A stretch of DNA of 64,000 nucleotides from Podarcis filfolensis (taxonomy: Eukaryota). Location of the stretch: assembly GCA_964270895.1 (NCBI GenBank), contig OZ185435.1. One strand, written 5' to 3'. Positions 5,211 through 57,719 of the stretch are shown piece after piece. The notes below the pieces were generated by a model. That model did no database searches. It was not told where the DNA came from and saw only the letters and a program-made list of their open reading frames with translations. The translations under genes and the position numbers were made by a program. How positions within the stretch are numbered: position 1 is the stretch's first letter; each line of letters starts with the position of its first letter.

Positions 5211-8200
5211 TGCAAGCTGCTGCCACCTCTCACTTTCCTTGCCCCAAAGTCCATAAACTTATCTTCGGAACAGGTAAAAAGTGGCGGAAGATGCAGTGGC
5301 AAGCACTTCGAAGGCCCAATAAAACATCTCCCCCCCCACCCCAGTGACTTGGACTACAAAACCAGGATTCCCAGCAGGAAAAGATGTTCTGATGGGGCTT
5401 GGGACTACCTGCCAGTTCAGCTTTCTCCCAGCTCAAAGTTAAGTTTCTGCAGCTTGGAGCAGAGGAAGGGGGAGGAAGAGGTTGTGGTGGGCACTTCATG
5501 GGCACCCTTGGACCTTTGCAAGCATCTGATATGAGCACTTACAAAAGTGCATTTTGGGGGAGGAGTAGGATGCTTGTGCATCTCCAAGAGCAACATATCC
5601 TTCCATCCCTCAGAGCACTATCTGGAGAACAAGGTGGTCCCTGATCATGAAAGAGTTGGCAAACTATAACAAAGACTTCAGGGAAAGACTTAAAAAACTA
5701 ACTATGGTGCTATAGAGCAATGACCCACAGTCCTTTCTAATTGCACCAGTGGAAATTTTCAGTGCAGAGCTTATTGTTTCTGGATTAAAACACAGCATTT
5801 GGTTGTTTATGAATGCTATCTGTACTAGAGTTACTTCCTTGAATACTATGTTGACTGCTAGCATCTCCTCCCCCTTCCATTTTCTGGTATCTATTAACAC
5901 TGAGAACAGCAACTCTAAGCACTCAGAACACAAGCATACACAAAGCAAAGAGCCAACAGAACAAGAAGTCTCCCTAGATAAATGGATTTCTTTCCAATAA
6001 GAAGAGATTTGATTTTGCCATGCTTGGGCCCACAGCCAAATGCCTAGTTCTGTCTTTCACACTCACTCGCTCTTGTTCATAATTCTTTGTATTAATTTAA
6101 AAGTCTGCCTGTTAACTTATCATTACAAACAAATGACACTTTTTGCATCTATGAATTAATAACAAATTCTTGTGTGAAACTAAATCATAGCATGTACAAA
6201 AGTGCAATGGAAGGAGAAGCTTCTCAAACATCAATGGATATGAATGCCAAGAAACCTTCCAGGAAATCCATGGGGCACCTAAACAGGATTATAATCAAGA
6301 TTATTTTGGTATAGAATTTCTGGCAGAGCAGTCAGAAAAGGAAACATCTGATCAGAACATTATTTTTAGTAGCATTTCTTGCAGTAGAAGTGTCACTGAG
6401 TAGTTACCTAAACACACACTCAGAAATAACTTTTGAATAAAAAGCCAACAGTCTGTAGAAATAAAGGAATGGAGTGGGGGGTGGCTGGGCTGGAGAAAAT
6501 TGTTTTAATAGCGTCCATTAAACCATGCACAGCCCAAAGGCACTTGCACACCAGAGGGCTATGAGAAATCTATAATTGCTTTGCTTGTAGCCTTCTTAAG
6601 GTATCAACAGGCAAATATCCATCAGCACCGTGTGGCTCCTGAGATATACACACAGCCAGACCTTATTATACTTATCCTCTGAGATCAAAGCATATTCACA
6701 TAAATGGGGTGCAGCCTTCCATGGAGGGCAGCCAGGGGGCCTGTCATGGATCTGCAGGAATAAACTTCTTGAAAAGTTTGGGCGATGATGCGATTGTTCT
6801 GCTGTGGCTGGAGGAACACTCCGCGTGACTGATGATCAGGGCTGAACCAAAGCAGGAGAGAGAGGCAGCTGGAAAAGCAAAGCAGCTGTAGTTGCAGGAG
6901 TAAAAAACAGCCTCAGTCTGGAAGGGTCAAGCCTCCATCTAAAGGGAGCATTTAATCCTTTACTATCCTTAATTAAGGCTCTGCCAAGTTGCCTGTAATT
7001 CTCCCCCTCCCCATGGAAGTTCTGCTAGTGGAATTGGAAAACACTGGAGGACTGTGAGGTGGGGGTTTTTTATTATACTTTCATCAGAGCTAAGAACAGA
7101 ATTTAAGACCAAACATATAGGGCTCTCCTGTGTACATGCAAGTTTCACAACCCCCCCTCCCCCATCATGCTCTCTTCTGATGTAGGCGCAGCTGCTTGTA
7201 TTCAAACTTCTGCTGTTATGTTAGTACCCTCCCCTGAAACCAGAGAGCAAACACCAATCCCCAGGACACTGAATTACATCGTGACATGCCCTCTAAAATC
7301 ACCTACTGAAAGTCTTTGCCTGGAAAGTTCACAGCAGAATAGCCTATACCTTGCTGAAAACCAAAAATCCACACCAGCGAGGTCTTCAAGGCACATATGA
7401 ATGAAAACACCCACAGCTACACACACAGGTTGGTTGGCTAACACAGTGCACAAGCGGAGCTAGGAGCCAAGGAGGGGGTTTATGCAAAGATTTCATCAGG
7501 GATAATCAAAGGGAGACACAAAGCACTAAGATGTGCAAACAAAAATAGGGATCTTGGTGCAATTTCAAACATGCCATCTCGACTAAAAGCACAGATTTGT
7601 TACCTGCAGAATAGGGAGGTGGAGAGGGGGGTCAAATAGGTTCCACAATAACTAATTATGGTCCCTGAATACTCTCCTCCCCACCCACGATCCTCACTCT
7701 CCTTATTCATCCAGCGAGGTAACATAGATTGAGGCAGCAGCTCAAAGATGGCTAATATCTAAGCCTCTGGCTCCATCGCCAGACCCAACCTGTACACCAG
7801 CCAAGCTTAAAAGGCGTATTTAAGAAGCCAGCATCTCTCCTAGTCTACACAACAGGCACACACCATCATTCAGCCCCTCGTTCGACTTAAGGCTGTAGGT
7901 TGGGGAAGATTTCGTGATGCTTTAAAGAGCCTGAAGTACAGCGGGCGATCTGGAGGGGTGTGTGCGTGTAGTGGATGGGTTGCAACCAAGCCTGCTCTCA
8001 GGTTTTCCAAAAGTGATCGAAGATCGCCCCGTTCCTGTGCGAAAAGCGAAACGCAGCATTGTGGGTTAAATGCTGTATAATACGGATGAGCCACTAGCCA
8101 TGAAGCCCAGGAAACTCAATATATATAGGTTTCATCCATATGGGATGAAACCAGCAGGACGGAGAGCGAAACATCAGTCTGCTTTGCCTCGTACAACGGA

Positions 8201-8719
8201 CTGACAGCCAACAGTTTGCCCCCTTCCCCCCTTCCAGATCCGTGGAAACAACCCAAAGCCCAGCGCACAAAAAGCATCGTTGTGCCTGGAGACGGCGGCT
8301 TCTCCCTCGAAAGTGTCTGTCTGTCGTGCCAGAGGAGCGGCGGGGGGAGGGCAGAGGGGGTTGGGATATACAGAGGAGACGATAAGTGGGTTTGGTTTGT
8401 GGTGGTGGGTTTTTATTTTTGTCCAATAATTACTGGTGTGGGGGAACAATGTAGGGCGGAAGACGAGGCAATAAATCCGGGGGGGGAATCAATTTGGGAT
8501 CCCTTTCCATAGGGGAGCCCTCCCCCCAAAAAAATACCCTCCCCCTGCTTCCCTCAAAACAAAGGGAATCCAACATCACACGCTCCGCAACGTAAACCAT
8601 CACCCGAGATATAAACACACCACACACATCACCAAATCTCGCCTCCAGGTCTCGCCGGGGCGCTGGCAGCCCAGCCTGTCTCCCCAACCAGCCGCCGCCG
8701 CCGCCCCTCTGCTCTTTAC

Positions 8720-8792
8720 CTGTTCGGAAAAAGGCATCCACCTCGGAATCGGGAACTGCCCCTTCCTCCGCTGCCCCCTCGGCGGGGTTCAT
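8720..8792 (-). CDS. KALRN: Kalirin (RhoGEF kinase) first coding exon, acidic 'exon 1B'-type N-terminus; rest of gene lies beyond position 1
   Basis: ATG at 8792-8790 gives MNPAEGAAEEGAVPDSEVDAFFRT plus one G, then donor G|GTAAAG (73 nt, phase 1). Matches the recalled mammalian Kalirin N-terminus MNPPEGA(A/S)EEGGAADSDVDAFFRT-GSFRNDG. Head-to-head with ROPN1 as in mammals. Confidence 0.93.
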
Positions 8793-8823
8793 GGCTGGGC
8801 TCGGGGAGGAGAAGCAGGGGGCT

Positions 8824-8859
8824 CAGCAGCAGCAGCAGGCACGGCAGCAGCAGCAGCAA
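8824..8859 (-). repeat. Interrupted trinucleotide repeat (CAG)5 GCACGG (CAG)4 CAA; (CTG)n on the KALRN sense strand
   Basis: Read directly, 32-67 nt upstream of the KALRN ATG. Confidence 0.95.
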
Positions 8860-8877
8860 CGATCCCGGCGGCTGGGT

Positions 8878-9026
8878 NNNNNNNNNNNNNNNNNNNNNNN
8901 NNNNNNNNNNNNNNNNNNNNNNNNNNNNNNNNNNNNNNNNNNNNNNNNNNNNNNNNNNNNNNNNNNNNNNNNNNNNNNNNNNNNNNNNNNNNNNNNNNNN
9001 NNNNNNNNNNNNNNNNNNNNNNNNNN
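8878..9026. other. Assembly gap (149 N)
   Basis: Run of n. Confidence 1.
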
Positions 9027-9280
9027 AGAGAAAGCAGGGAGGGGAGGGATGGAGGAGCCTTCAGCAGCAACCAGCCCGGGCGAGCCCCATCCCTGCCAGG
9101 GGGTCTGCTGGGATCTTCGGCTACTCCTGCCTGTCCTCGGGGGGGGGGTCCCCGCCTCCTCCGCCTCTTCTTCTTACCCCAAAGGCGTGTACACACACAC
9201 ATGCACACACACACACCAGTAGCGCCTCACGCTGCGCCCGCCCCCTCTCCTCTCTATTGTTCAGACCTGCTCTCTGATCG

Positions 9281-9285
<5 letters not shown>

Positions 9286-9339
<54 letters not shown>
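9286..9339. repeat. (TC)27 microsatellite
   Basis: Read directly. Confidence 0.97.
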
Positions 9340-9341
<2 letters not shown>

Positions 9342-11254
9342 CCACCCACCACCACCTCCTCCTCCTCCTCAGCTTTTGCCGGCGATCCCCCTCCTCCTAT
9401 TTGTTCCACGCGTGATACTCTCCCCCACCCACCCACCCACCCAGCCAAACAAACAAAAACCCACCCACCCGAGGTAGGGATATACACAGAGATGACAGCT
9501 CAGTTTTCCCCGGGCGCCACCGCTACCACCCACCCGTCCCCCCGCACGACAACACCCCCATCTCTTTTTTTAATCCTCATTGTTGCAAAGCAGCTTTGGC
9601 AGGACTTCCTGAAAGGAGGCAGGAAAAGCTGGGAGGCGACGAGCCGCGTAAAGGGAAAGAGAGGGTCGCGTGCGCTTGAGGGAGAGGGGAAGTGCCCTGG
9701 GCGAAGATCAAAGGGGCTTCCTCTCTCTCTTCCCCTCGCCTCAATCCCCTTAGTTCGCTCGGGCCACCTTCCCTGTCATCGCAGCCTGCCTTCCCTTCTC
9801 TTTCTTTCTTTAGCCCACCTAAGCTCCTCTCCCCCTCCCCACCCTTTCCATCCTCTGATGATTCACCTCCGCTTGCCCTCTCATTATAGAAGCAGCAATT
9901 AAAATCCTTTCCTACTTAACCGGAAGAGTAACAAGCAAACAAGAGGGTGTAGGAGCTGGGCAACGTTCAGGTGTGCAAGGAAATGCACGGTGGGCAGCCA
10001 GGGAGAGCGACGGGAGGGGGTGTCTAGCTAAGAAAAGGGCAGGGAACTGGCTCCTGTTGAATTTCAGAGAGCGAGAGGTGGAGGGAGGCGGCAGGAGAGC
10101 GGCTCCACAGACGTCACTTTGGTAATTGTTGCAGACTGTTGTATCAGTTGGTTTCCAAACAATAATTAGGGGGCTTGACAGTTTCCAGAATAGGACCTGA
10201 AGTTCCATTTCTAAAGATGCCCGCAAAGGTTTGTGTGAGAGAGGAAGTGGAAAGAGAAAGGGAGAGAAAATACCATGTTTCCAACAAGTCACTCCCCCCC
10301 CCAAAGGATACTTCCAAGGTAGCAGCTTTGCAGCTTAGAATTCATAAGAAGAGCTGCCTGTGGCATCAACACTCTGCATCACTTGTTCTGCCCATTTCCA
10401 CTCACTTCCTTCCCTTTCTATATCAAGTGAGTGAATTTCTGCCTCCTAAAGGCTCCCAAGATGATGCGTTTAGACAGTGGAGATCAATATTTTTATGAGG
10501 GTGGGGGAAAGTGCCTCTGTAGCTCAGCCAGGCCAGGATTACATGATGGAAGCACTTGGAAGTATAAGTGCTATGTCCCAAAAGACTCCATATAAGTACT
10601 AGTTGGAAAGATACATACATATTTACGCAGGATGGAGTGACACTGGATAGTGTAACATCATAACAGACTCTGGTTTTCCTGTGTTTTATGCTAATCTTGC
10701 TCCGTTCACGTCAGTAACGTGTGCCATTGTAAAAAATCTACTGTTAGATTTCTATAGCACTTGGATACCTTCAGGGGTTGTCAGGTATTTGTACCCAGGT
10801 GGAGCATCTAACAGTATTTATTACAATGGCTTCAGAAGTATAAGACCCACCCCCACAAAAATATTTAGACATCACAGAAAGGTTTAGAGGTTGTGAGATG
10901 GGATCAAACATTTCCTTCTTGCAGCAGTATCCAAACTGCTTTGTACTATTTAGTAACAGTTGGCCTGGCTGTAGAGTTGGACACACCTTTCATATCTCAA
11001 AAACTGTTGTCTGGAGAAGAGAATCCAACCAGTGGTTGGTAGCATGACTGGCTGTTGTGGAGAACCATTGTAAAGACATGATCAAAAGACAAGACTGGGG
11101 TGATATACCCCCTCTAAACTACCCCCTTCCCTCCTCCCTCTGTTGAAATCGAGAATGTAAGCTGCTGGTGAGCAAGGGACTGGCTAATTTTGCTTATGCT
11201 ACTATGTAAAGTGCTATGTACATAGATGCTGCTGAGCGATAAATTAGAGGTAAT

Positions 11255-11659: not shown

Positions 11660-12060
11660 ACATAGCTAGCTCCATACACTATGCCCAATCTCCCAAGCTC
11701 TCCAGTCAAGCCTGCTCCAGGTACCAGGAGAACTGAGCTTTGGTGGGTGAATGCAAGGGGCAGGGCCTTCCCAATTATGGCAGCAACACTGTGGAATGCC
11801 CTCCCCAGGGAAGTCCACCTCGCTACATCTTTGTGTACTTTTCATCACTTTGTCAAGTTGTGGTTCTTCTAGGGAGCACTTTGGAGGACAATGGCAATTA
11901 TAAGACTTTCCTTCAGCAGCAGTGATAGAAAATAACAAATCAGCCCGACTTTTTATTATTGCTTTTTAAAAATGAGTTTTGTTGCATTTTTGTATTATGA
12001 ACTTGCATTTATTATTTTATTGCAAGTCACTTTGAGTTCTTACAGGAAAAGAAGAAGATT
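11660..12060 (+). mobile_element. L2 LINE 3' fragment
   Basis: Translation GRAFPIMAATLWNALPREVHLATSLCTF matches the L2 ORF2 C-terminal motif (RAFSxxAPxLWNxLP), followed by a T-rich 3' UTR. Confidence 0.75.
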
Positions 12061-12246
12061 GAAATAAATAGATAAGCAAGAATTCCACAATAACAATCAG
12101 CTTTGGTTGATCTTCCTGATTCGGCAGTACAGCCTGAGAGGCTATGCTGCACTGACATTTGCCTGGTTATACTCCAGGAATATCTGAGGCTGCCGGTGGG
12201 CTCCAGTCATTGCAAAATCTGCCCCTGAGCACAAAGGCCTCACTTC

Positions 12247-12447
12247 AGAGCCATGGTTTATTGGTAGAGCACATGCTTTGAATGCAGATGATCCCATATT
12301 CAATTCCTGACATTTCTAATTTAAATAAAAGGATTGGCTAGTAGGTGACAGGAAAGACCTTTACTTGGACCACTGTCAATCAGAGTGGTCCATCCTAGAC
12401 AGACAAACGATAGTCTGATCTGGTATGACAGCATATTTACTGATCCT
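12247..12447 (+). mobile_element. tRNA-derived squamate SINE (Squam3-like), degenerate
   Basis: tggtagagcacatgctttgaatgcagatgatcccatattcaattcctgacat head plus body ending in ctgatcct. Confidence 0.65.
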
Positions 12448-12917
12448 AAACATTTCTATATAAACAGGTGTGCCTTCAGAAGGATCTTCACTCACCACTT
12501 GCAGAGGGAGCAAACACAGCAAAGAAAGACACTGTGAACTGTAAAGGTGCCATCCAGGAAAGGCATAATAGGCAGCATCCTTCACCATATTTCAAGCAAC
12601 ATGCTTTTATTCATTTGAAACACATGCATTTCCTGTTATGATTAAGTATAAATTAAAAATTAAAAACCTTAAACAATTACCTTAAAATTAAGGTGCCTCT
12701 CAATGTTCATGGGTGAACATTTTTTTGCACAGCAGGAGACTTTGGCAAGAACAATAAAAAGATCCCCAAATTTCCTGCCTGACAGACCCCTCCCAAAATT
12801 TTACCTTATTGGCATCAGTTCATCCACATTGTTCACTACCTGTTTCAATTATTATTATTTTTTAAAAAGTGTCTTCCCCCTGACCCCAGCTTTATTATTC
12901 CCCAAAATGCAATCCAG

Positions 12918-13125
12918 CCAATCGCAGAAAATGATGTGAATGTGATGACATCATAAGGCCAAACAGCTACTGAGATTTAGCGCTGTGACGACATCATTGA
13001 CGGCACATGTAACTAGTTCAATGAGGTCAGTGCTTTGTGCCTCACATTACTCTCAATCTGGATTGGCAGGGAGGATAAGAAGCGCAGTTGCTATGACAGC
13101 TGCTACTTCCTCCTCCTAAGTAAGA
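12918..13125 (+). promoter_or_regulatory. Candidate testis/cilia-type promoter and non-coding first exon (CCAAT, CRE-like sites, RFX X-box, splice donor)
   Basis: CCAAT 12918-12922; TGACATCA 12946-12953; TGACG 12986 and 12998; TGAGGTCA 13022-13029; ATTGG 13062-13066; GTTGCTATGACAGC 13087-13100; donor AA|GTAAGA at 13120. Confidence 0.5.
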
Positions 13126-13714
13126 TGGGCACAACTACACAACCCTTTTCACAGCTACTGCTGAATATATTAGACTTGGCCTTTCCCTTTTACCCCTCCT
13201 GCTGAATTCTGTTTTCTCCCTTCTTATGGCACCACCTGGAAGGATAGATAAATGCCGTTTACTGGACCAACATCTCAATAACCTTCACAACACTGTTCTT
13301 CAAATGAAAAAAGGAGTGATTTAAGAGGCAATAAATCTGGTAGCGCTGGGTATATGAGAATGTCACACATGTCCTTGTAAAGGACTGCTGGGTATTGCTG
13401 CAGACCATGATGTGGTGATCTACTTCCCCATGCATGGAGGATACTGAGGAAGTTAGCTCACTGCCCAGTCCAGACCTCTTGAACTGCTGCAGCTGTGAAG
13501 AGGGCAGAGGATGGAGGCAGAGCTGGACCAAGGAGAACCCAGGGAAGGAGAAAAGGCAGCTGGAAGGCATCCCATGAGAGATGAAAGTGGAGCGGCAAAC
13601 CCCAGTGAGTGGTATCAGGAACAAACTATCACAGACTGGGGTGACCAGAGTATCCAAGGAGAAAGGAAATTAGAGCAGAGGTCAAGTGGAGAACACTATT
13701 CCTAGCTATTTCAT

Positions 13715-17488: not shown

Positions 17489-18199
17489 TAATTACTAAGA
17501 ACACCATGCTTGCTAGGTTTTATATATCACATAGTTTATTTAAAAAGCTACATTTGCAAAGTAAGTTAAGACATCAGCACACAAGAAATGAAGAGATCTG
17601 GCAATTCTGAGAGGCACTGGATGGCTATGACCTATCAAACACAGAAGAATTTGGTTCTGAGTAAATAATAACAATAGGATTATGCTGAAAAGCTACAGTC
17701 CTATGCACACTTGGTAGTAAATCCCACTAAATTCAGCACAATTTGTTTCTGTAAATAACCCTTCCACAGTTCTGCCAAGCTAGATTATGAGAAGAACTGA
17801 ATAGAAGAGTACCAGATAGGTCCTTGAGGGTGAGAGGCAACATGTAAGGCCTAACTAGTAAAGCATAACAATAAGTCTTTAAAAGCACTATCAGTGTTGC
17901 AAAGACTTTAAGTAATCATGAGCTGGACTCTGCTAGCTTTGTGAAACAAGGGAAGATGCCTTCCTTCACATCTTGCTTTTCTGAAGTAATCTTGGCAATG
18001 CAGGACACAAGGCCTCCTCACCTAAGGGAGGCATCTTGGCAAGCTTTTGGGCACAGTTTCATGATATCCCTAGCAGAGATGCAGATTGCAGTTTAAGGGC
18101 CAAGGGGGGGAAAGCCATTCTGGATGGTGAGGGATTCCCTTCAAATATGAGAATTGGGAAATGAAGCCTACTTTCTGCAATAACCTACTTTGATGTCAT

Positions 18200-18428
18200 G
18201 CCAGCACTATGCAAAAGCCTTTTTTTAATTTTCTCAGGCATGTTAATTTGTGCGTTTTTACTGTTGATACTTGGGTTTTAGCCTGTTCTCTTACTTGCTG
18301 TTTGACTTTATTGTTGTTGTTTTATAAAGCTTTTATTATTGTTTATTTGTGCTGTGTTTTTTATATTTTACTGGAAGCTGTAAGATTGTTTTTGAAGGAT
18401 GACGTATAAATACTTTAAAATAAATAAA
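18200..18428 (+). mobile_element. L2 3' UTR/tail fragment
   Basis: T-rich tract ending gaagctgtaagattgtttttgaaggatgacgtataaatactttaaaataaataa. Confidence 0.5.
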
Positions 18429-19084
18429 CAGACGAATGCTTTAGATTTATTGGAGAAATAACAAGGTGATTACATAATATCAAATTTCTCTAGGAAGCTA
18501 GTAATAAATATGGTGTAAGTAAGGGCAGATGCCACGTTGGACCAAGAAAGCAAAACACATGAAAGAGATGAGAGACTTCTAGAAACTTGGTCAAAGTACA
18601 GCATTTGTCCATCATGCTTCCATTGCATGTCAGTGAGCATGGAATCAAAGGCAGTCATCTGAGTTAATAGCACCCCTTCCAAGTTTACCCCACTTCTCCT
18701 CAGAACCCTTTGACCTTTTTCTGTAACTGCTCACATCCATTTTCATTCAGTTTTGTCCTGCAGTGGACAGAGCTTTGCTGTTCATGCACAGCTACTGTAC
18801 TGATGCCTATACATATGTGGTTAAACCAGTATCATTTCACGTTCTGCCATTTTAAAATGAATGCATAAATAAATAAAAATCTCTCAGTATCTTTGTGGAT
18901 GCTCTTGTATATATATCGGGACCTGAACACCATTTATTCTTCCTTGTTTTATGGATTACCATATAGAAACTGTATGATTTTTATTGTTTCATTTATACTG
19001 TGTTCTGCCTTAGGTGCACAATGTGATAAAAAACGATTAACAAAATCTATAGATAAGTAACCTGAGTGCCTTCCTGAAATGCCG

Positions 19085-19350
19085 CTTTTGTGCAAACTGG
19101 AGCATTTCAGGAATGCAGTGGCACAGCACAGTGCCACTGCCACTTACCTGGGTGGTACCAGGCAGGGCAGGATAGTAGTGAGGTCAGGACTTTGTAGGCA
19201 CACTGGTGCAGTGCTAGAGGGTGTCACACAGCCCCAAACTCAGCTTGCCCTGCTTCACCCCCACAATAGCCACATAAGTGGCAGTGACACAGCACTGCCC
19301 CACTACCTCAGCAACACCTGGTGCCATGACACACCCCAGTATTTCAAAAG
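19085..19350. mobile_element. Foldback (palindromic) MITE-like element
   Basis: Nested inverted arms: cttttg..aaactgg / ccagtatttcaaaag; gtgccactgccactta / taagtggcagtgacac; gcagggcag / ttgccctgc. Confidence 0.6.
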
Positions 19351-53237: not shown

Positions 53238-53695
53238 TTACTGCAGCAGCCTCCCTTCCTGTATTTTTGTAGTCCCAGAACAGAAGGAAAGCGAGAACAA
53301 CAACCACAACTTATTGGACTGTTGTATGAAGGTATTACCTGGGTTAATGGAGAAAGAATACCTTGGTTGCCCATTTGTTCCTAATATGGCCTCACCCAGG
53401 TCTGCTTGTACACACAGAGCAGAAAGAGCTGGGAAAGAGGCTATAGATTTCAGAAGTGGTAGTAGATGGGTACCATTTCAGGTGTAGGGGGAATCACTTT
53501 TAAAAAAATATTCTGCTGTGAGTTTTAAAAAATACAAGTTGAAAAGTAGCACAGCAAGGAGCAGGCCACTAAAGTACCGTACTTTGGTCCTCAGAGTCCT
53601 AATTTTCTTCTTACTGTGAATGCCAATTCTAAACATCAATTCGAATTGGTACAATCCACTCCACAATCCCCACAAGCTTGGATTCTACCACTGTA

Positions 53696-55781
53696 GAGGA
53701 CTTCCGGGTTGGTGCCACTGTTTAATGGCGGATTCCCTCCGAGCTCCGGAGGGAATCGGCTCCGTAGTGTCTGGGTCTGGCCGCTGCGGCGAAGCGGGGA
53801 CCCTTAAAATCACAGGCGCGGATGCCTGTGAACACAGAGACTCGGCGGGCACCATTTGCGCCCCCCCAATCCGCGACGGAGCCTCTTTAAAGGCTTCGGA
53901 ACGGAGGCAGGGTAAGGCGTGGTGCTGAGAGTACTCCCTCGCCTACGGAGTGAAGCCGCAAGCCATTGACAGAGAGCGCCAACTTCTTTTAAGAGTGATT
54001 GGATCCTAAAACATCAACCCGTGAGTAATACGGAGATTGGAACTTTAAAAAATTTCTTATCCTGGATTTGGAACGAGCGGGAAGGGGCTAAAAAGGAAGT
54101 CCACCCCCCCCTCTTTGTAAACAACTTAAAGCAAAGGACTGGGCAGCTAAGGTCGAGAGAATCTGTTTTTTGCTTTTCTTAACAAAGATCCTGACCTCAC
54201 GGTTTGGACATTATAAGAAGATATTCTGGAGGATAAAAAGAATTTTGGGAGCTGAAACTACACCCCCCCCTAGACCCGGGAACGTCCGATGAGAAAGCCT
54301 GTTGCATGGAAGATTTTGACAGCTGTCAAGTGAGCTGCTAGTCAGCTAGTTGTCAGCTGGAAAAAGAGAACATTGTTTCTGCTGTTTTTGCTGGTTTATT
54401 CGGGATAACTTGTTGAAAATAAGGTTGATACAAAATAACTGGACTTTTGGTTTTTGAGCTGAAAGGAAGATTAAGGAATTAAATCCCCCTAGAGGGGTAA
54501 CAAGGATACTACATTACAAAAATGGCTGGAGTGTCTAAATTCCAAGCAGAATTGGACAGAGCACTGGTTCTCTTGGGAAACTTACAAGATGAGTACGATG
54601 CTTTGTCTACAGAGGTATCGCTATTACACTGGACAGTAAACAACAGCTTGGAGTCTGATAAGGATTTGAAACAGGAAGCCTATTCAACTGAACAAATAAA
54701 TGAAACCGAAAGCGTAGACACGATGGAGCAATATGTTCTTTTTGAAGAAAACGAAGGAGGAGATGGAGGTTTGCAGGAGTCAAAGGAGAGCTACAATATG
54801 AGGCCTGACATGATGATAAAAAAGGACAATAAAAACTGGATGCGGAAAGCCTGGTTTGATTGGGAATTTGGAAAATGGAGAGATCCTCTTTTGAGGAGAT
54901 CTGAAGACCTGAGGATTATAAATTTGTTGAAGGTGGAAGCTGGAGCTGTGGGGACATTTGGATTTGAAAGAAATTTGAAACAAGAGTTGGAATACCCCAT
55001 AGGCTTTGCTTTTGCTTTTAAGTATGGAGGACTGGCTAGAAGTAACACCGATTCTGTTGGGCCTGAGCCCCTCCGAGACCTGGGGCTTAACATCAAGGTC
55101 TATCAAAGAGACCGGCAGAAAGGAACTGAGAGAGACATAAGGGCCTCGGACCTGAGATCTCCAGGCTAAATAAATAATATAAAGACTGATGGATATTGGT
55201 TGGGGACTGGAACCGGGAGAAGGGTGGGTGGAGGTTGGGAATCCAAAGGGTACATAAGGATAATTTGCATTGCTTTATTTGTTTTATATTTTGTTAGTGG
55301 TAAGGAAATTGGGTAAACCGTGGAAGGGAAATTTTGGTCGACCTTAGGAAAAAGGTTTAAGAATAAATTAATGAGGTATAAGTATTGATGAGTAATTTCA
55401 ATAAGGTGAAACTGGTTTTTTTTCCTTTTTTTTTAAATTAAGTGAAAATAAGGCTGTTAAAAATAAATGGAGGAAATGGAAAAAAGAAATAAAGTAAAAT
55501 AACAGTATGTTAGAATAAATGTTTAAGTTAAGGTGAAGAAATAAGTTAAGGACTTGCTGAATTGACAATTTAAATTGGAATACAAGAAGGGGAGGTGTGA
55601 GGAGGTCTGAGAAACAAGGTTGAGGAAAATAAGTATCAGAAACTGTATGTGTTTTTTCTATTTTTCTGGTTAGTTTTGAATATGCTTTTTTGTGTTGTTT
55701 TTATTTTGTTTATTTTTTTTGTTTTTGTTTGTTGTGTGTTTTTTGAAAATACCAATAAATATTTAATAAAAAAAAAAAAAA
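53696..55781 (+). mobile_element. Full-length non-autonomous L1-type retroposon with a single ORF (HAL1-like)
   Basis: Perfect 16-bp TSD GGATTCTACCACTGTA (53680-53695, 55782-55797); CpG-rich 5' UTR starting GAGGACTTCCGG..AATGGCG; one ORF; T-rich 3' end, AATAAA and poly(A); no endonuclease/RT ORF. Confidence 0.85.
54522..55169 (+). CDS. Retroposon-encoded 215-aa protein, putative diverged L1 ORF1p
   Basis: Intact ORF with good Kozak (AAAATGG); N-terminal heptad coiled-coil (FQAELDRALVLLGNLQDEYDALSTEV); LRRSEDLRIINL resembles the ORF1p RRxNLRIxGL motif. Homology inferred, not searched. Confidence 0.6.
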   Translation: MAGVSKFQAELDRALVLLGNLQDEYDALSTEVSLLHWTVNNSLESDKDLKQEAYSTEQINETESVDTMEQYVLFEENEGGDGGLQESKESYNMRPDMMIKKDNKNWMRKAWFDWEFGKWRDPLLRRSEDLRIINLLKVEAGAVGTFGFERNLKQELEYPIGFAFAFKYGGLARSNTDSVGPEPLRDLGLNIKVYQRDRQKGTERDIRASDLRSPG

Positions 55782-57719
55782 GGATTCTACCACTGTATTC
55801 TGCTGTGTGTGGCGAATTAAAAGGGCAGAGGACATTTTCCCATTGCAGTAAATCTGGTGCTGTTGGGAGGGTCGCCATTAGTGGCCGAGTTGTCCTATTC
55901 CCTACACTGTACCTACTTTCCGTACTCTTCCTACCATGAGGAACCGCACATCATATAAGCTTTGTAAAAGCCCTTCTACCTTAAGATAGTTCACCAGCTA
56001 ACAGCTACAGTCTCCACCCTTTCTCCCCCTCTTTTTCATGGCAACTGCATAAGATCCCAGATGAGTTTCAATACTGGATTTTGTTACACCATATTTGTCT
56101 GGTGGGCTCTTTTTTGGATGAATCACAAGTAATACCAATCTCCCTTTATAGCCTAGATTTAAAAAACAACAACTCAATCTTTACTTTTGCAATTTGAATT
56201 ATTAAATTGCACCAACGTAAGATAATATTGTATGGATATTCAGGCCTCTCCCTCATTCATGAACACAAACATATTCCACAGAAATTATTGCTTTAACATG
56301 TAACAAAGGGAGGTTGCAAATTTACAAGGAGTAAAGCTGGATTGGTATAACATCCAACTAATCATGGGTTGCCACATTCTCACATGGTAGAAGCCCTAAG
56401 AATCCCACTGTTGCAGCTGTCCTGATGGCAGCTATTATCTGCGGAAGTGCATCTAATGCTATAAAGACACTTAACAGTGCGGGTTAACATTACTCTTCAT
56501 ATGACCACTGATTGTATTAATATAGGCTGATTAATGTATCTCTCGGAATGAACTGTTGTAATCTTGCATCCAAAACTTTATCATAATCCATTGTATTTCT
56601 GTTTCTCTCTCCTGCCCTTTAGCCTGTTTTACTAGGGGCACCATTTATGAATCTGGCTTTTTGTGTCTGTGAATTTGTCTGTTCCTGCAGTCTTCTTCCT
56701 CACCTGAAGTCATAATCTTATATTTATAACATTACAGTTAGCAGCTGTGGAGATAATTCTGATTTCAGAGAAGATTTTGACTTCAGGTGAGCAAAAGATA
56801 AAAAGCAGACAGAGCTAATATATATTGTTGTTGTTGTTTTCATCTATGTTTGTTAGTGTGTCACTTAGCTTTCCACTTCCTTGGTTCCTACAGATTTGGT
56901 GGCGCAACAAAATTCTTTATGCTTTTTATTTTGTTCTCTTTTCCCCAAGCTCAACCATGTTATCAGGGAGGAAGGGAATTCTTTCAGACAGAATAAATTA
57001 TTCACTTTACTTATATATCTAATTCTTATCACAATGTTGGTATTTTCAGATCTTTAGGAGATTTTAAAAACATACCCTGTTGCTGACAGTCAAAACTCAC
57101 TTATCACAGTCCTGTGTGGTGCACAGCATAACTGTAGCCTCTTAGGAAACAAGCTTCCAGGCTCATCTCAGCCCACCCATGCTCACCATTGGCTTCTTCC
57201 AGGCAGGAAGGAGTATACAAGGCACAGGCCAATAACAAATAAATTAAGAGTACTCTATCTACTGAGTAAAGGGGAATTTTCAGGAAATAGTCATTTACCA
57301 AAACAGAGCAACTCAAACATCAACTTTCCTAGAGAATATCTCCTTATATACAATGTTGTGCATTAATGTATTACTGTTATTGTTACTATAAAGTGCCAAT
57401 ATATATATATTTTTAAGAGAGTATATAAAGCCCAGTGTATATAGTAATTGGCCGCAGTCTAACAGATATTAAAGTGTGCTTAATCCCACTGAAATCATTA
57501 GTATCACAGTAACTCTGCCCTGTGGCCCCTGTTCTTTGATACATCTTAGCACATAAAAATTGAACTGCATTCTTGGTATGGCTTTCCATCATAATAAGAG
57601 ATGTTTATCAAGAAACACCTACCTTAAAAATTTAAGCTTCACATGACTTGTACAAGGCCCTCCACTCCCTTATCCTCCTCCTCACAATAACCCTGTGAGG
57701 TAAGACTAGGCCGGGAACT

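Follow-up and report, generated by a model that had tools for sequence, protein, structure and literature searches.

A protein-coding retroposon in Podarcis filfolensis belongs to a lacertid family of probable HAL1-like L1 derivatives that have lost ORF2

A 64,000-nucleotide stretch of the genome of the lizard Podarcis filfolensis (GenBank assembly GCA_964270895.1, contig OZ185435.1), hereafter called the window, harbors on its plus strand a retroposed element of 2,086 bp (53696–55781) which an earlier note, made from the sequence alone, had proposed to be a 'half-L1', that is, a complete, young L1 parasite encoding only a protein similar to the product of the first open reading frame (ORF1p) of L1. 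Positions are those within the window unless they are said to be element coordinates, which count from the first base of the retroposon. The bounds of the element are set by its A-tail and by a perfect 16-bp target-site duplication, GGATTCTACCACTGTA, whose left copy (53680–53695) is identical at 16 of 16 positions to the right copy (55782–55797). The 5′ untranslated region (UTR) is 826 nt long, and its first 345 nt are CpG-rich (CpG observed/expected ratio 0.93, GC 0.58), the same ratio being about 0.4 in the remainder of the element and 0.24–0.28 in the flanks. It leads into an intact plus-strand open reading frame (ORF) of 215 amino acids running from ATG to TAA (54522–55169), one of three ORFs of at least 150 amino acids in the whole window. 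The 3′ region (612 nt, AT-rich, GC 0.29) carries on the plus strand a T/G-rich tract (55644–55745) ahead of an AATAAA poly(A) signal (55754–55759), the latter within a conserved CCAATAAA, and ends in a poly(A) tail of 14 A (55768–55781) directly after which the right duplication begins. No ORF of at least 110 amino acids other than the 215-residue one was found inside the element, and tblastn with two lizard L1 ORF2 proteins as queries yielded no significant match to a reverse transcriptase (RT) or an endonuclease (EN). The anatomy laid out in the earlier note was thus reproduced throughout, and the insertion is complete and young, a non-autonomous retroposon that codes for a protein and bears the hallmarks of L1. 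Nowhere else in the window does a copy of it occur, and a search of the element against Rfam returned no match.

The target site of the window element reads GCTT/GGATTC, a partial match to the TT/AAAA site of L1, three sites having been compared in all. In the neighborhood of the insertion we also observed a 15-nt direct repeat (TATTCTGCTGTG.GT, 14 of 15 positions identical) at 53509–53523 and 55796–55810. Its first copy precedes the insertion by 170 nt, and its second starts with the final two bases of the right duplication; chance or a local low-copy repeat is the probable explanation.

Relatives of the element were gathered by a word-based protein search, by scanning 1.84 billion representatives in full with HMMER and by repeating the word search with the resulting alignment; the contigs and loci compared are labelled L001 to L012, a suffix a or b denoting separate elements at one locus. 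The first word-based search already recovered the same protein in Logan contigs, together with a 212-residue relative at 43% identity. Four of the Logan contigs (L002 to L005), each from a different run, are 98.5–99.5% identical to the element over positions 19–1911 and differ from one another in combinations of variants. The word search and the HMMER scan further retrieved a series of diverged family proteins (P0002, P0006 to P0013 and P0015 to P0021), bringing the family to some 17 distinct proteins of 171–215 residues that are 27–44% identical to that of the window. The corresponding elements measure about 1.8–2.1 kb and fall into at least six deeply diverged subfamilies, which were found at several loci, in two assemblies and in Logan runs.

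Several of these copies bear the marks of retroposition in their own right. The copy at L009 is approximately 2.1 kb long, is bounded by the duplication AAAAGTATGACTCA[C/A]GCGA and was inserted at TATT/AAAAGT, which matches TT/AAAA; that at L012b is flanked by TAACT[G/A]TTTCTATC and lies at a target site reading ATTT/TAACT. The duplications of these two copies measure 14–19 bp. The copy at L007 ends with CCAATAAA and a short run of A, after which unrelated flanking sequence begins, and the T/G-rich tract seen in the window element recurs in L007, L009 and L012. In all full-length copies (those of the window, L009, L010 and L012 and the two at L008) the 5′ end falls on (G)ACTTCCGGG or no more than a few bases away from it, and the diverged copies at L008, L009, L010 and L012 are collinear with the window element over the parts that they retain. 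Two members, each from a different subfamily, are arranged head to tail at L008:3500–6520. The second of them starts (GACTTCCGGG) about 60 nt past the stop codon of the first, indicating that it was inserted into the 3′ UTR of the latter, and has the end of its ORF replaced by unrelated sequence from about position 6510. Decayed copies were also found, namely L008a and the one at L010, a locus from a second assembly (GCA_964188315.1).

The duplication, the A-tail and the AATAAA signal of the window element, taken alone, are the same as those of any retrocopy made by L1, and would also fit a processed copy of a host gene or one L1 copy that had suffered a chance internal deletion and never gave rise to a replicating family. 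Against either of these stand the many independent copies in deeply diverged subfamilies, which are alike in 5′ terminus, layout and 3′ end and occupy different loci in at least two assemblies. In addition, named relatives of the protein in the databases number only three, each entered as a 'hypothetical predicted protein' of Podarcis lilfordi and each situated inside such an element, and the 3′ region of the element is L1 sequence (see below). The evidence for a family already refutes this explanation, whose chances we put close to nil. None of the outcomes that the earlier note had named as fatal to its proposal, a single copy, a one-off deletion or a cellular retrocopy, was encountered, and the replicating lacertid family that it had postulated is documented by the separate duplications at L009 and L012, the nested pair at L008, the decayed copy at L010 and the near-identical as well as diverged Logan copies. 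The window copy is one ordinary member of this family, young and full-length.

One further candidate, P0014, was rejected as a true relative. This protein of 503 residues, which carries a retroviral env domain and matches the family with an E-value of 1e-5, derives from a gene model at L010 that involves splicing. Located by tblastn, its residues 1–441 lie at L010:6001–7323, an env exon recognized by the Pfam family TLV_coat, and its residues 442–503 at L010:22449–22634, inside the decayed family copy and 15 kb downstream of the env exon. P0014 is probably chimeric, either as an artifact of annotation or as a transcript.

The origin of the family was traced through two L1-type elements on the same set of loci. 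The first, at L010:13517–18070, is a 5′-truncated L1 consisting of the last 142 codons of ORF1, an intact ORF2 of 1,246 amino acids with EN and RT (L010:13961–17701) and a tail of 12 A; many intact relatives of this ORF2 are found among UniRef entries from Podarcis muralis. This L1 itself sits inside another long interspersed element (EN domain 11996–13513, RT 18018–19298), upstream of which lies a Ty1/copia-type gag-pol ORF (8331–10001). The second, L012a, occupies the first 1,485 nt of L012 (Podarcis lilfordi, OX395132.1) and is an L1 derivative devoid of RT, the 5′ end of which falls beyond the edge of the locus. Its ORF of 258 amino acids joins an N-terminal part located at the position of ORF1, in frame, to the C-terminus of ORF2 (residues 152–258), and is followed by an L1 3′ UTR, AATAAA and an A-tail. 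The ORF2 part is 66% identical to the ORF2 of the L010 L1 over 118 amino acids by tblastn and 76% identical over 95 amino acids by blastp, and at the DNA level positions 746–1187 of L012a match the autonomous L010 L1 with 73% identity over 445 bp (E = 3e-79).

L012a, in turn, aligns with members of the family in three regions. At the 3′ end, element coordinates 1652–2083 of the window copy match L012a 1068–1485 (64% identity over 443 bp, E = 1.4e-31), and coordinates 1529–2024 of the L009 element match L012a 990–1442 (E = 1.4e-40). Since the latter alignment begins inside the ORF2 coding sequence, the stretch that follows the stop codon of the family is a decayed ORF2 tail succeeded by an L1 3′ UTR. 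In the window element, aligning this region jointly with the end of ORF2 in L012a and in the L010 L1 accordingly places the remnant of the last 30 or so ORF2 codons at 55200–55346 (plus strand, approximate bounds), and alignment to L012a an L1-type 3′ UTR at 55347–55778 (plus strand). A profile of the conserved 3′ block of the family found its best non-family match, among all the DNA compared, in the 3′ UTR of the L010 L1 (E = 0.055). In the 5′ UTR, pieces of the L009, L008a and window elements match L012a at positions 14–89 (E = 3e-9), 14–243 (E = 2e-8) and 22–77 (E = 0.001), respectively. In the ORF, lastly, a DNA profile covering the initial 420 nt of the ORFs of the family matched L012a 525–747 with an nhmmer E-value of 1.4e-9. 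This is the part of the L012a ORF upstream of the ORF2 piece, and the frame of the match agrees with that of a weak match at the protein level, such that, over nucleotides ~120–330, the family ORF shares in-frame homology with the reading frame that L012a has at the position of ORF1. Judged by these alignments, L012a connects the family to autonomous L1, and the family demonstrably descends from L1 by loss of ORF2, a descent that can be followed in the proximal 5′ UTR, the 5′ half of the ORF and the 3′ region. The L1 origin put forward in the earlier note is thereby upheld.

The profile match ends at ...KEKQTNLRIRV of L012a, which is aligned with residues 91–110 of the window protein (YNMRPDMMIKKDNKNWMRKA). 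From the alignment of human ORF1p with that of L011, the NLRI-type motif would mark the start of the RRM domain of L1 ORF1p, and L012a is most simply read as an in-frame deletion extending from the middle of ORF1 to the end of ORF2. Given this reading, the ORF1-position match, the agreement of frame and the motif, it is most likely that the family ORF corresponds in its first half to the N-terminal, coiled-coil part of L1 ORF1. L011, which served as a control, comes from the same run series and carries a genuine lizard L1 with a 350-amino-acid ORF1 (L011:537–1586) and a 1,238-amino-acid ORF2. It represents a different L1 lineage, its ORF2 being 51% identical to that of the L010 L1, and direct comparisons with its 5′ UTR, ORF1 and ORF2 gave nothing significant.

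The ORF has been retained throughout the family. A frame of 171–215 codons persists in each of the subfamilies set apart by a synonymous divergence (dS) of about 1 or more, and the insertions and deletions within it comprise whole codons. These subfamilies share the start context ACAATGGC, a conserved protein N-terminus (MA..GK.QAE..R.F.L.G.LQ) and a conserved end (...RGTERDLRASDVR.PG-stop; ...RASDLRSPG in the window protein), and the middle of the protein, acidic in the window copy, is variable and partly deleted in some of them. A conserved palindrome, CCCCCTAGAGGGG (54485–54497, plus strand), lies about 25 nt before the ATG and occurs at the same place in L006, L007, L008, L010 and L012a. 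The ORFs of the window element and L001, whose products are 44% identical, differ at a proportion of 0.55 of synonymous sites and 0.32 of nonsynonymous sites, for a ratio of nonsynonymous to synonymous change (dN/dS) of 0.41. Across all family pairs the ratio spans 0.3–0.74, and is highest for genomic copies close to one another, which have also decayed since insertion. The comparison of dN/dS across copies that the earlier note had suggested therefore returned values of about 0.3 to 0.7.

Such figures could be taken to mean that the ORF has no function, open frames being encountered merely because young copies were sampled and because protein databases hold only open frames. The dN/dS of 0.66–0.74 between close copies, the almost equal divergence of the three codon positions, the predicted disorder of most of the protein and the existence of decayed copies such as L008a and L010 all lean in that direction. 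It is nevertheless hard to reconcile with at least six subfamilies, dS ~0.8 to more than 2 apart, each of which carries a frame of 171–215 codons with a common start context, a common C-terminal end (...ASD(V/L)R.PG-stop) and whole-codon indels; neutral sequence at such divergence would be expected to carry many stop codons. A non-functional ORF is in our view quite improbable, and the pattern points instead to purifying selection on the replicating lineages that is weak but real.

Pfam searches with the window ORF and 16 of its relatives gave nothing meaningful, and a sequence search of the PDB with the window protein found no relative. With the family profile, the sole PDB hit was to residues 1–43 of neuroguidin (7mq8_NC), aligned from Met1 with an E-value of 0.22, probably a chance likeness of one helix to another. 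In the ESM Atlas no neighbor scored above 0.79, none was named and the recognition score was low. AlphaFold2, run with an alignment of 14 sequences, predicted a helix over residues 2–72, confidently so for approximately residues 1–40 (predicted local distance difference test, pLDDT, 82–92); the rest of the protein remained below a pLDDT of 55 and had no strands, the mean pLDDT of the two models being 44 and 50. In the best register, 13 of the 17 a and d heptad positions of the N-terminal helix are hydrophobic. A homotrimer prediction from three copies of residues 1–75 scored 0.22, compared to a mark of 0.32, a value that counts neither for nor against self-association. The window protein is acidic (isoelectric point, pI, ~4.8), as are most others (pI 4.5–6.4 in 12 of 14 members), whereas the last 45 residues alone are basic (pI ~9.7 in the window protein and ~9–10 across members).

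The L011 control helps to weigh these blanks. Although it is a genuine ORF1p, the L011 protein has no match to the Pfam family Transposase_22 even at E = 10; a blank in Pfam consequently weighs little for the family protein, and Pfam is unusable for ruling an ORF1p in or out in lizards. In the PDB, the L011 protein aligns weakly but correctly to the RRM and C-terminal domain (CTD) of human ORF1p (E = 0.18–0.19), and the family protein does not. The profile and structure comparisons with L1 ORF1p called for in the earlier note thus came out negative, with nothing found by hhalign against L011 and neither RRM nor CTD in the AlphaFold2 models. The segment EYPIGFAFAFK of the window protein does resemble a strand of the L011 CTD, EFPEGISFFYK, but the resemblance is not conserved in the family. 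Likewise, the motifs LRRSEDLRIINL and EYPIGFAFAFKYGG are present in the window ORF, as the earlier note had it, but are varied or deleted in sister subfamilies, and we rejected them as remnants of ORF1p. The description of the protein as ORF1p-like accordingly holds in part. Its position at that of ORF1 and the in-frame homology of its first half to L012a speak for it, while the lack of RRM, CTD and L011 match, the acidic charge and a last 300 nt of ORF with no L1 counterpart speak against; in a structural sense the family protein is not a recognizable ORF1p.

These properties raise the question of whether the element, although derived from L1 and mobilized by it, encodes what is in effect a new protein that works in a manner unlike the RNA chaperoning of ORF1p, at least its conserved C-terminal half and perhaps its N-terminal 40 residues having arisen de novo or been captured from a host transcript. 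The unmatched last 300 nt, the missing RRM and CTD, the low pI of ~4.8, the low ESM Atlas score with no named neighbor and the fact that the only PDB profile match, at an E-value of 0.22, starts at Met1 and covers the first 43 residues of neuroguidin would all be accommodated. On the other hand, the ORF lies exactly at the position of ORF1, its nucleotides ~120–330 have an in-frame homologue at the ORF1 position of L012a, the neuroguidin match is not significant and involves a helix only, and missing matches weigh little when a genuine lizard ORF1p escapes Pfam as well. We regard a new protein of this kind as unlikely, albeit worth serious consideration.

The best-conserved part of the family is the CpG-rich 5′ domain of 345 nt (53696–54040, plus strand). 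The first ~450 nt of the elements are 65–84% identical across subfamilies, compared to 40–56% in most of the ORF. An alignment of five 5′ ends revealed three invariant plus-strand motifs: ACTTCCGG at the 5′ terminus (53700–53707), which we take from its consensus to be an ETS-type site; AATGGCGG (53724–53731), presumably, again by consensus, a YY1-type site; and ACCCGTGAGTA (54017–54027), which is splice-donor-like and pairs in the predicted fold with the 5′ terminus, closing the domain. A YY1 site fixes the start of transcription in human L1, and a retroposon needs a promoter downstream of its start site to stay active after each jump. The RNAalifold consensus of the 345 nt comprises 104 pairs, with 92.3% of cells paired, and its helix 1 (columns 7–14 with 337–344) is 100% paired. 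Fourteen pairs are changed on both sides, compared to 7.0 ± 2.0 in shuffles, only 1 of 500 of which reached 14, and to 0–4 with slid partners; the alignment consists of five sequences from about three lineages. Folded as a single sequence, the domain reaches z = -5.3. The antisense strand folds nearly as well (z = -5.1), with a much weaker centroid, and the sense-strand fold includes several G-U pairs. Collectively, these predictions are suggestive of a structured RNA.

With such a domain at the 5′ end of the element, one may conceive of a division of labor in which the protein is an ORF1 remnant stripped of both RNA-binding domains, a coiled-coil adaptor with a new, conserved basic tail, and in which the conserved, self-closing 345-nt RNA domain rather than the protein gives access to the ORF2 protein (ORF2p). 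The adaptor could, for example, co-assemble with the ORF1p of a partner L1 or dock on the translating ribosome. If true, the family would illustrate how far a protein-coding L1 parasite can be pared down, and this would be a hijacking strategy unlike that of HAL1, which has a full ORF1p, and unlike that of Alu and SVA, which have no protein. We consider this scheme rather doubtful.

In all likelihood, then, the window element is a member of a lacertid family of L1-derived, ORF2-deleted, HAL1-like retroposons of ~1.8–2.1 kb that are mobilized by L1. Transcription would start from a promoter within the conserved CpG-rich 5′ domain, where the ETS-type and YY1-type sites lie just after the fixed 5′ end. 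The polyadenylated RNA would then be translated into a protein of ~200 amino acids whose N-terminal half stems from the coiled-coil part of L1 ORF1, and the ORF2p of autonomous lizard L1s, with its EN and RT, would copy this RNA into new sites, leaving a poly(A) tail and duplications of 14–19 bp. From the A-tail, the duplications of that size, the one clean TT/AAAA site and the intact ORF2 genes of lizards, we infer that mobilization occurs in trans. The protein most likely would act in cis, helping its own RNA to compete for ORF2p, possibly by self-association of its helix and contacts made by its basic tail.

A number of observations sit uneasily with this account. L1 ORF1p is a basic protein, and the family protein is acidic. 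AlphaFold2 predicted neither RRM nor CTD in it, hhalign of the family profile revealed no similarity to the genuine lizard ORF1p of L011 (probability 0.05%), and the Pfam, PDB sequence and PDB profile searches found no match to any ORF1p. The N-terminal part of L012a was identified as ORF1 from its position and from the NLRI-type motif, no bona fide ORF1p having been matched. For the last 300 nt of the family ORF, which contain its best-conserved tail, none of the L1 sequences compared offers a counterpart, and no autonomous L1 with the same 5′ domain or the same ORF1 occurs in the ~132 kb of lizard DNA compared. Constraint on the ORF is weak, with dN/dS up to 0.74 between close copies, and the window target, CTT/GGAT, differs from the classical TT/AAAA.

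The closest parallel to the family is provided by the HAL1 ('half-L1') elements of mammals, reportedly described by Smit in 1999 and by Bao and Jurka in 2010. HAL1 encodes a recognizable, full ORF1p. Like HAL1, the lizard family is an L1 derivative minus ORF2 that keeps an ORF at the position of ORF1, has been amplified as a family of its own and bears A-tails and target-site duplications, and both presumably use ORF2p in trans. The two differ in that the host here is a lizard, in that the L1 counterpart of the lizard protein is limited to its N-terminal part (it has neither RRM nor CTD, is acidic and ends in a conserved C-terminal tail unmatched in L1) and in that the 5′ domain of the lizard family is structured, as far as predicted, and more conserved than the protein. 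HAL1 is mentioned in PMC4161310 and PMC5753468. ORF1-only L1 derivatives are described in mammals; no such HAL1-like element was found described in squamates in the literature searched. With the autonomous L1s of lacertids (L010, L011 and the Podarcis muralis relatives), the family shares, by way of L012a, a homologous 3′ UTR and an ORF2-tail remnant, as well as the same poly(A) signal context, an A-tail and, in the one case with clean boundaries (L009), a TT/AAAA target; unlike them, it has neither EN nor RT and measures 2.1 kb instead of ~6 kb. L012a resembles the family in its proximal 5′ UTR, its ORF1-position frame and its 3′ region, all three homologous, but keeps 118 ORF2 codons and lacks the C-terminal half and the conserved tail of the family protein.

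Parallels exist outside of the L1 clade as well. HeT-A, found at Drosophila telomeres, is a gag-only non-LTR (long terminal repeat) element. It resembles the lizard family in being a non-LTR lineage that persists in the long term with its first ORF only and with RT supplied in trans, and differs from it in belonging to an unrelated clade (Jockey), in being targeted to telomeres and in having a full Gag with zinc knuckles. Context on HeT-A is given in bioRxiv 10.1101/2025.06.09.658640. With Alu, SVA and processed pseudogenes, the lizard family has in common the A-tail, the duplications and what would be a mobilization in trans by L1 ORF2p; unlike all of these, it has its own ORF, kept across deep subfamily splits.

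Elsewhere in the window, a gap of 149 N (8878–9026) is surrounded by overlapping ORFs of 120–233 amino acids on both strands (8791–9902; for example 9201–9902, 233 amino acids), and those of them that were scanned had no match in Pfam. In all, five other window ORFs were scanned against Pfam, and none of them gave a match.

Squamate genomes harbor many L1 lineages that are active side by side. The retention, across deep splits between subfamilies, of a very small, acidic and largely disordered protein without RRM or CTD makes the lizard family a natural experiment on which functions of ORF1p are needed in cis. Paired with this protein is a conserved, structured and CpG-rich 5′ domain, a candidate promoter and RNA element. 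Recognition of the family would also clean up lizard annotations, among them the 'hypothetical predicted protein' genes of Podarcis lilfordi and the env gene model P0014.

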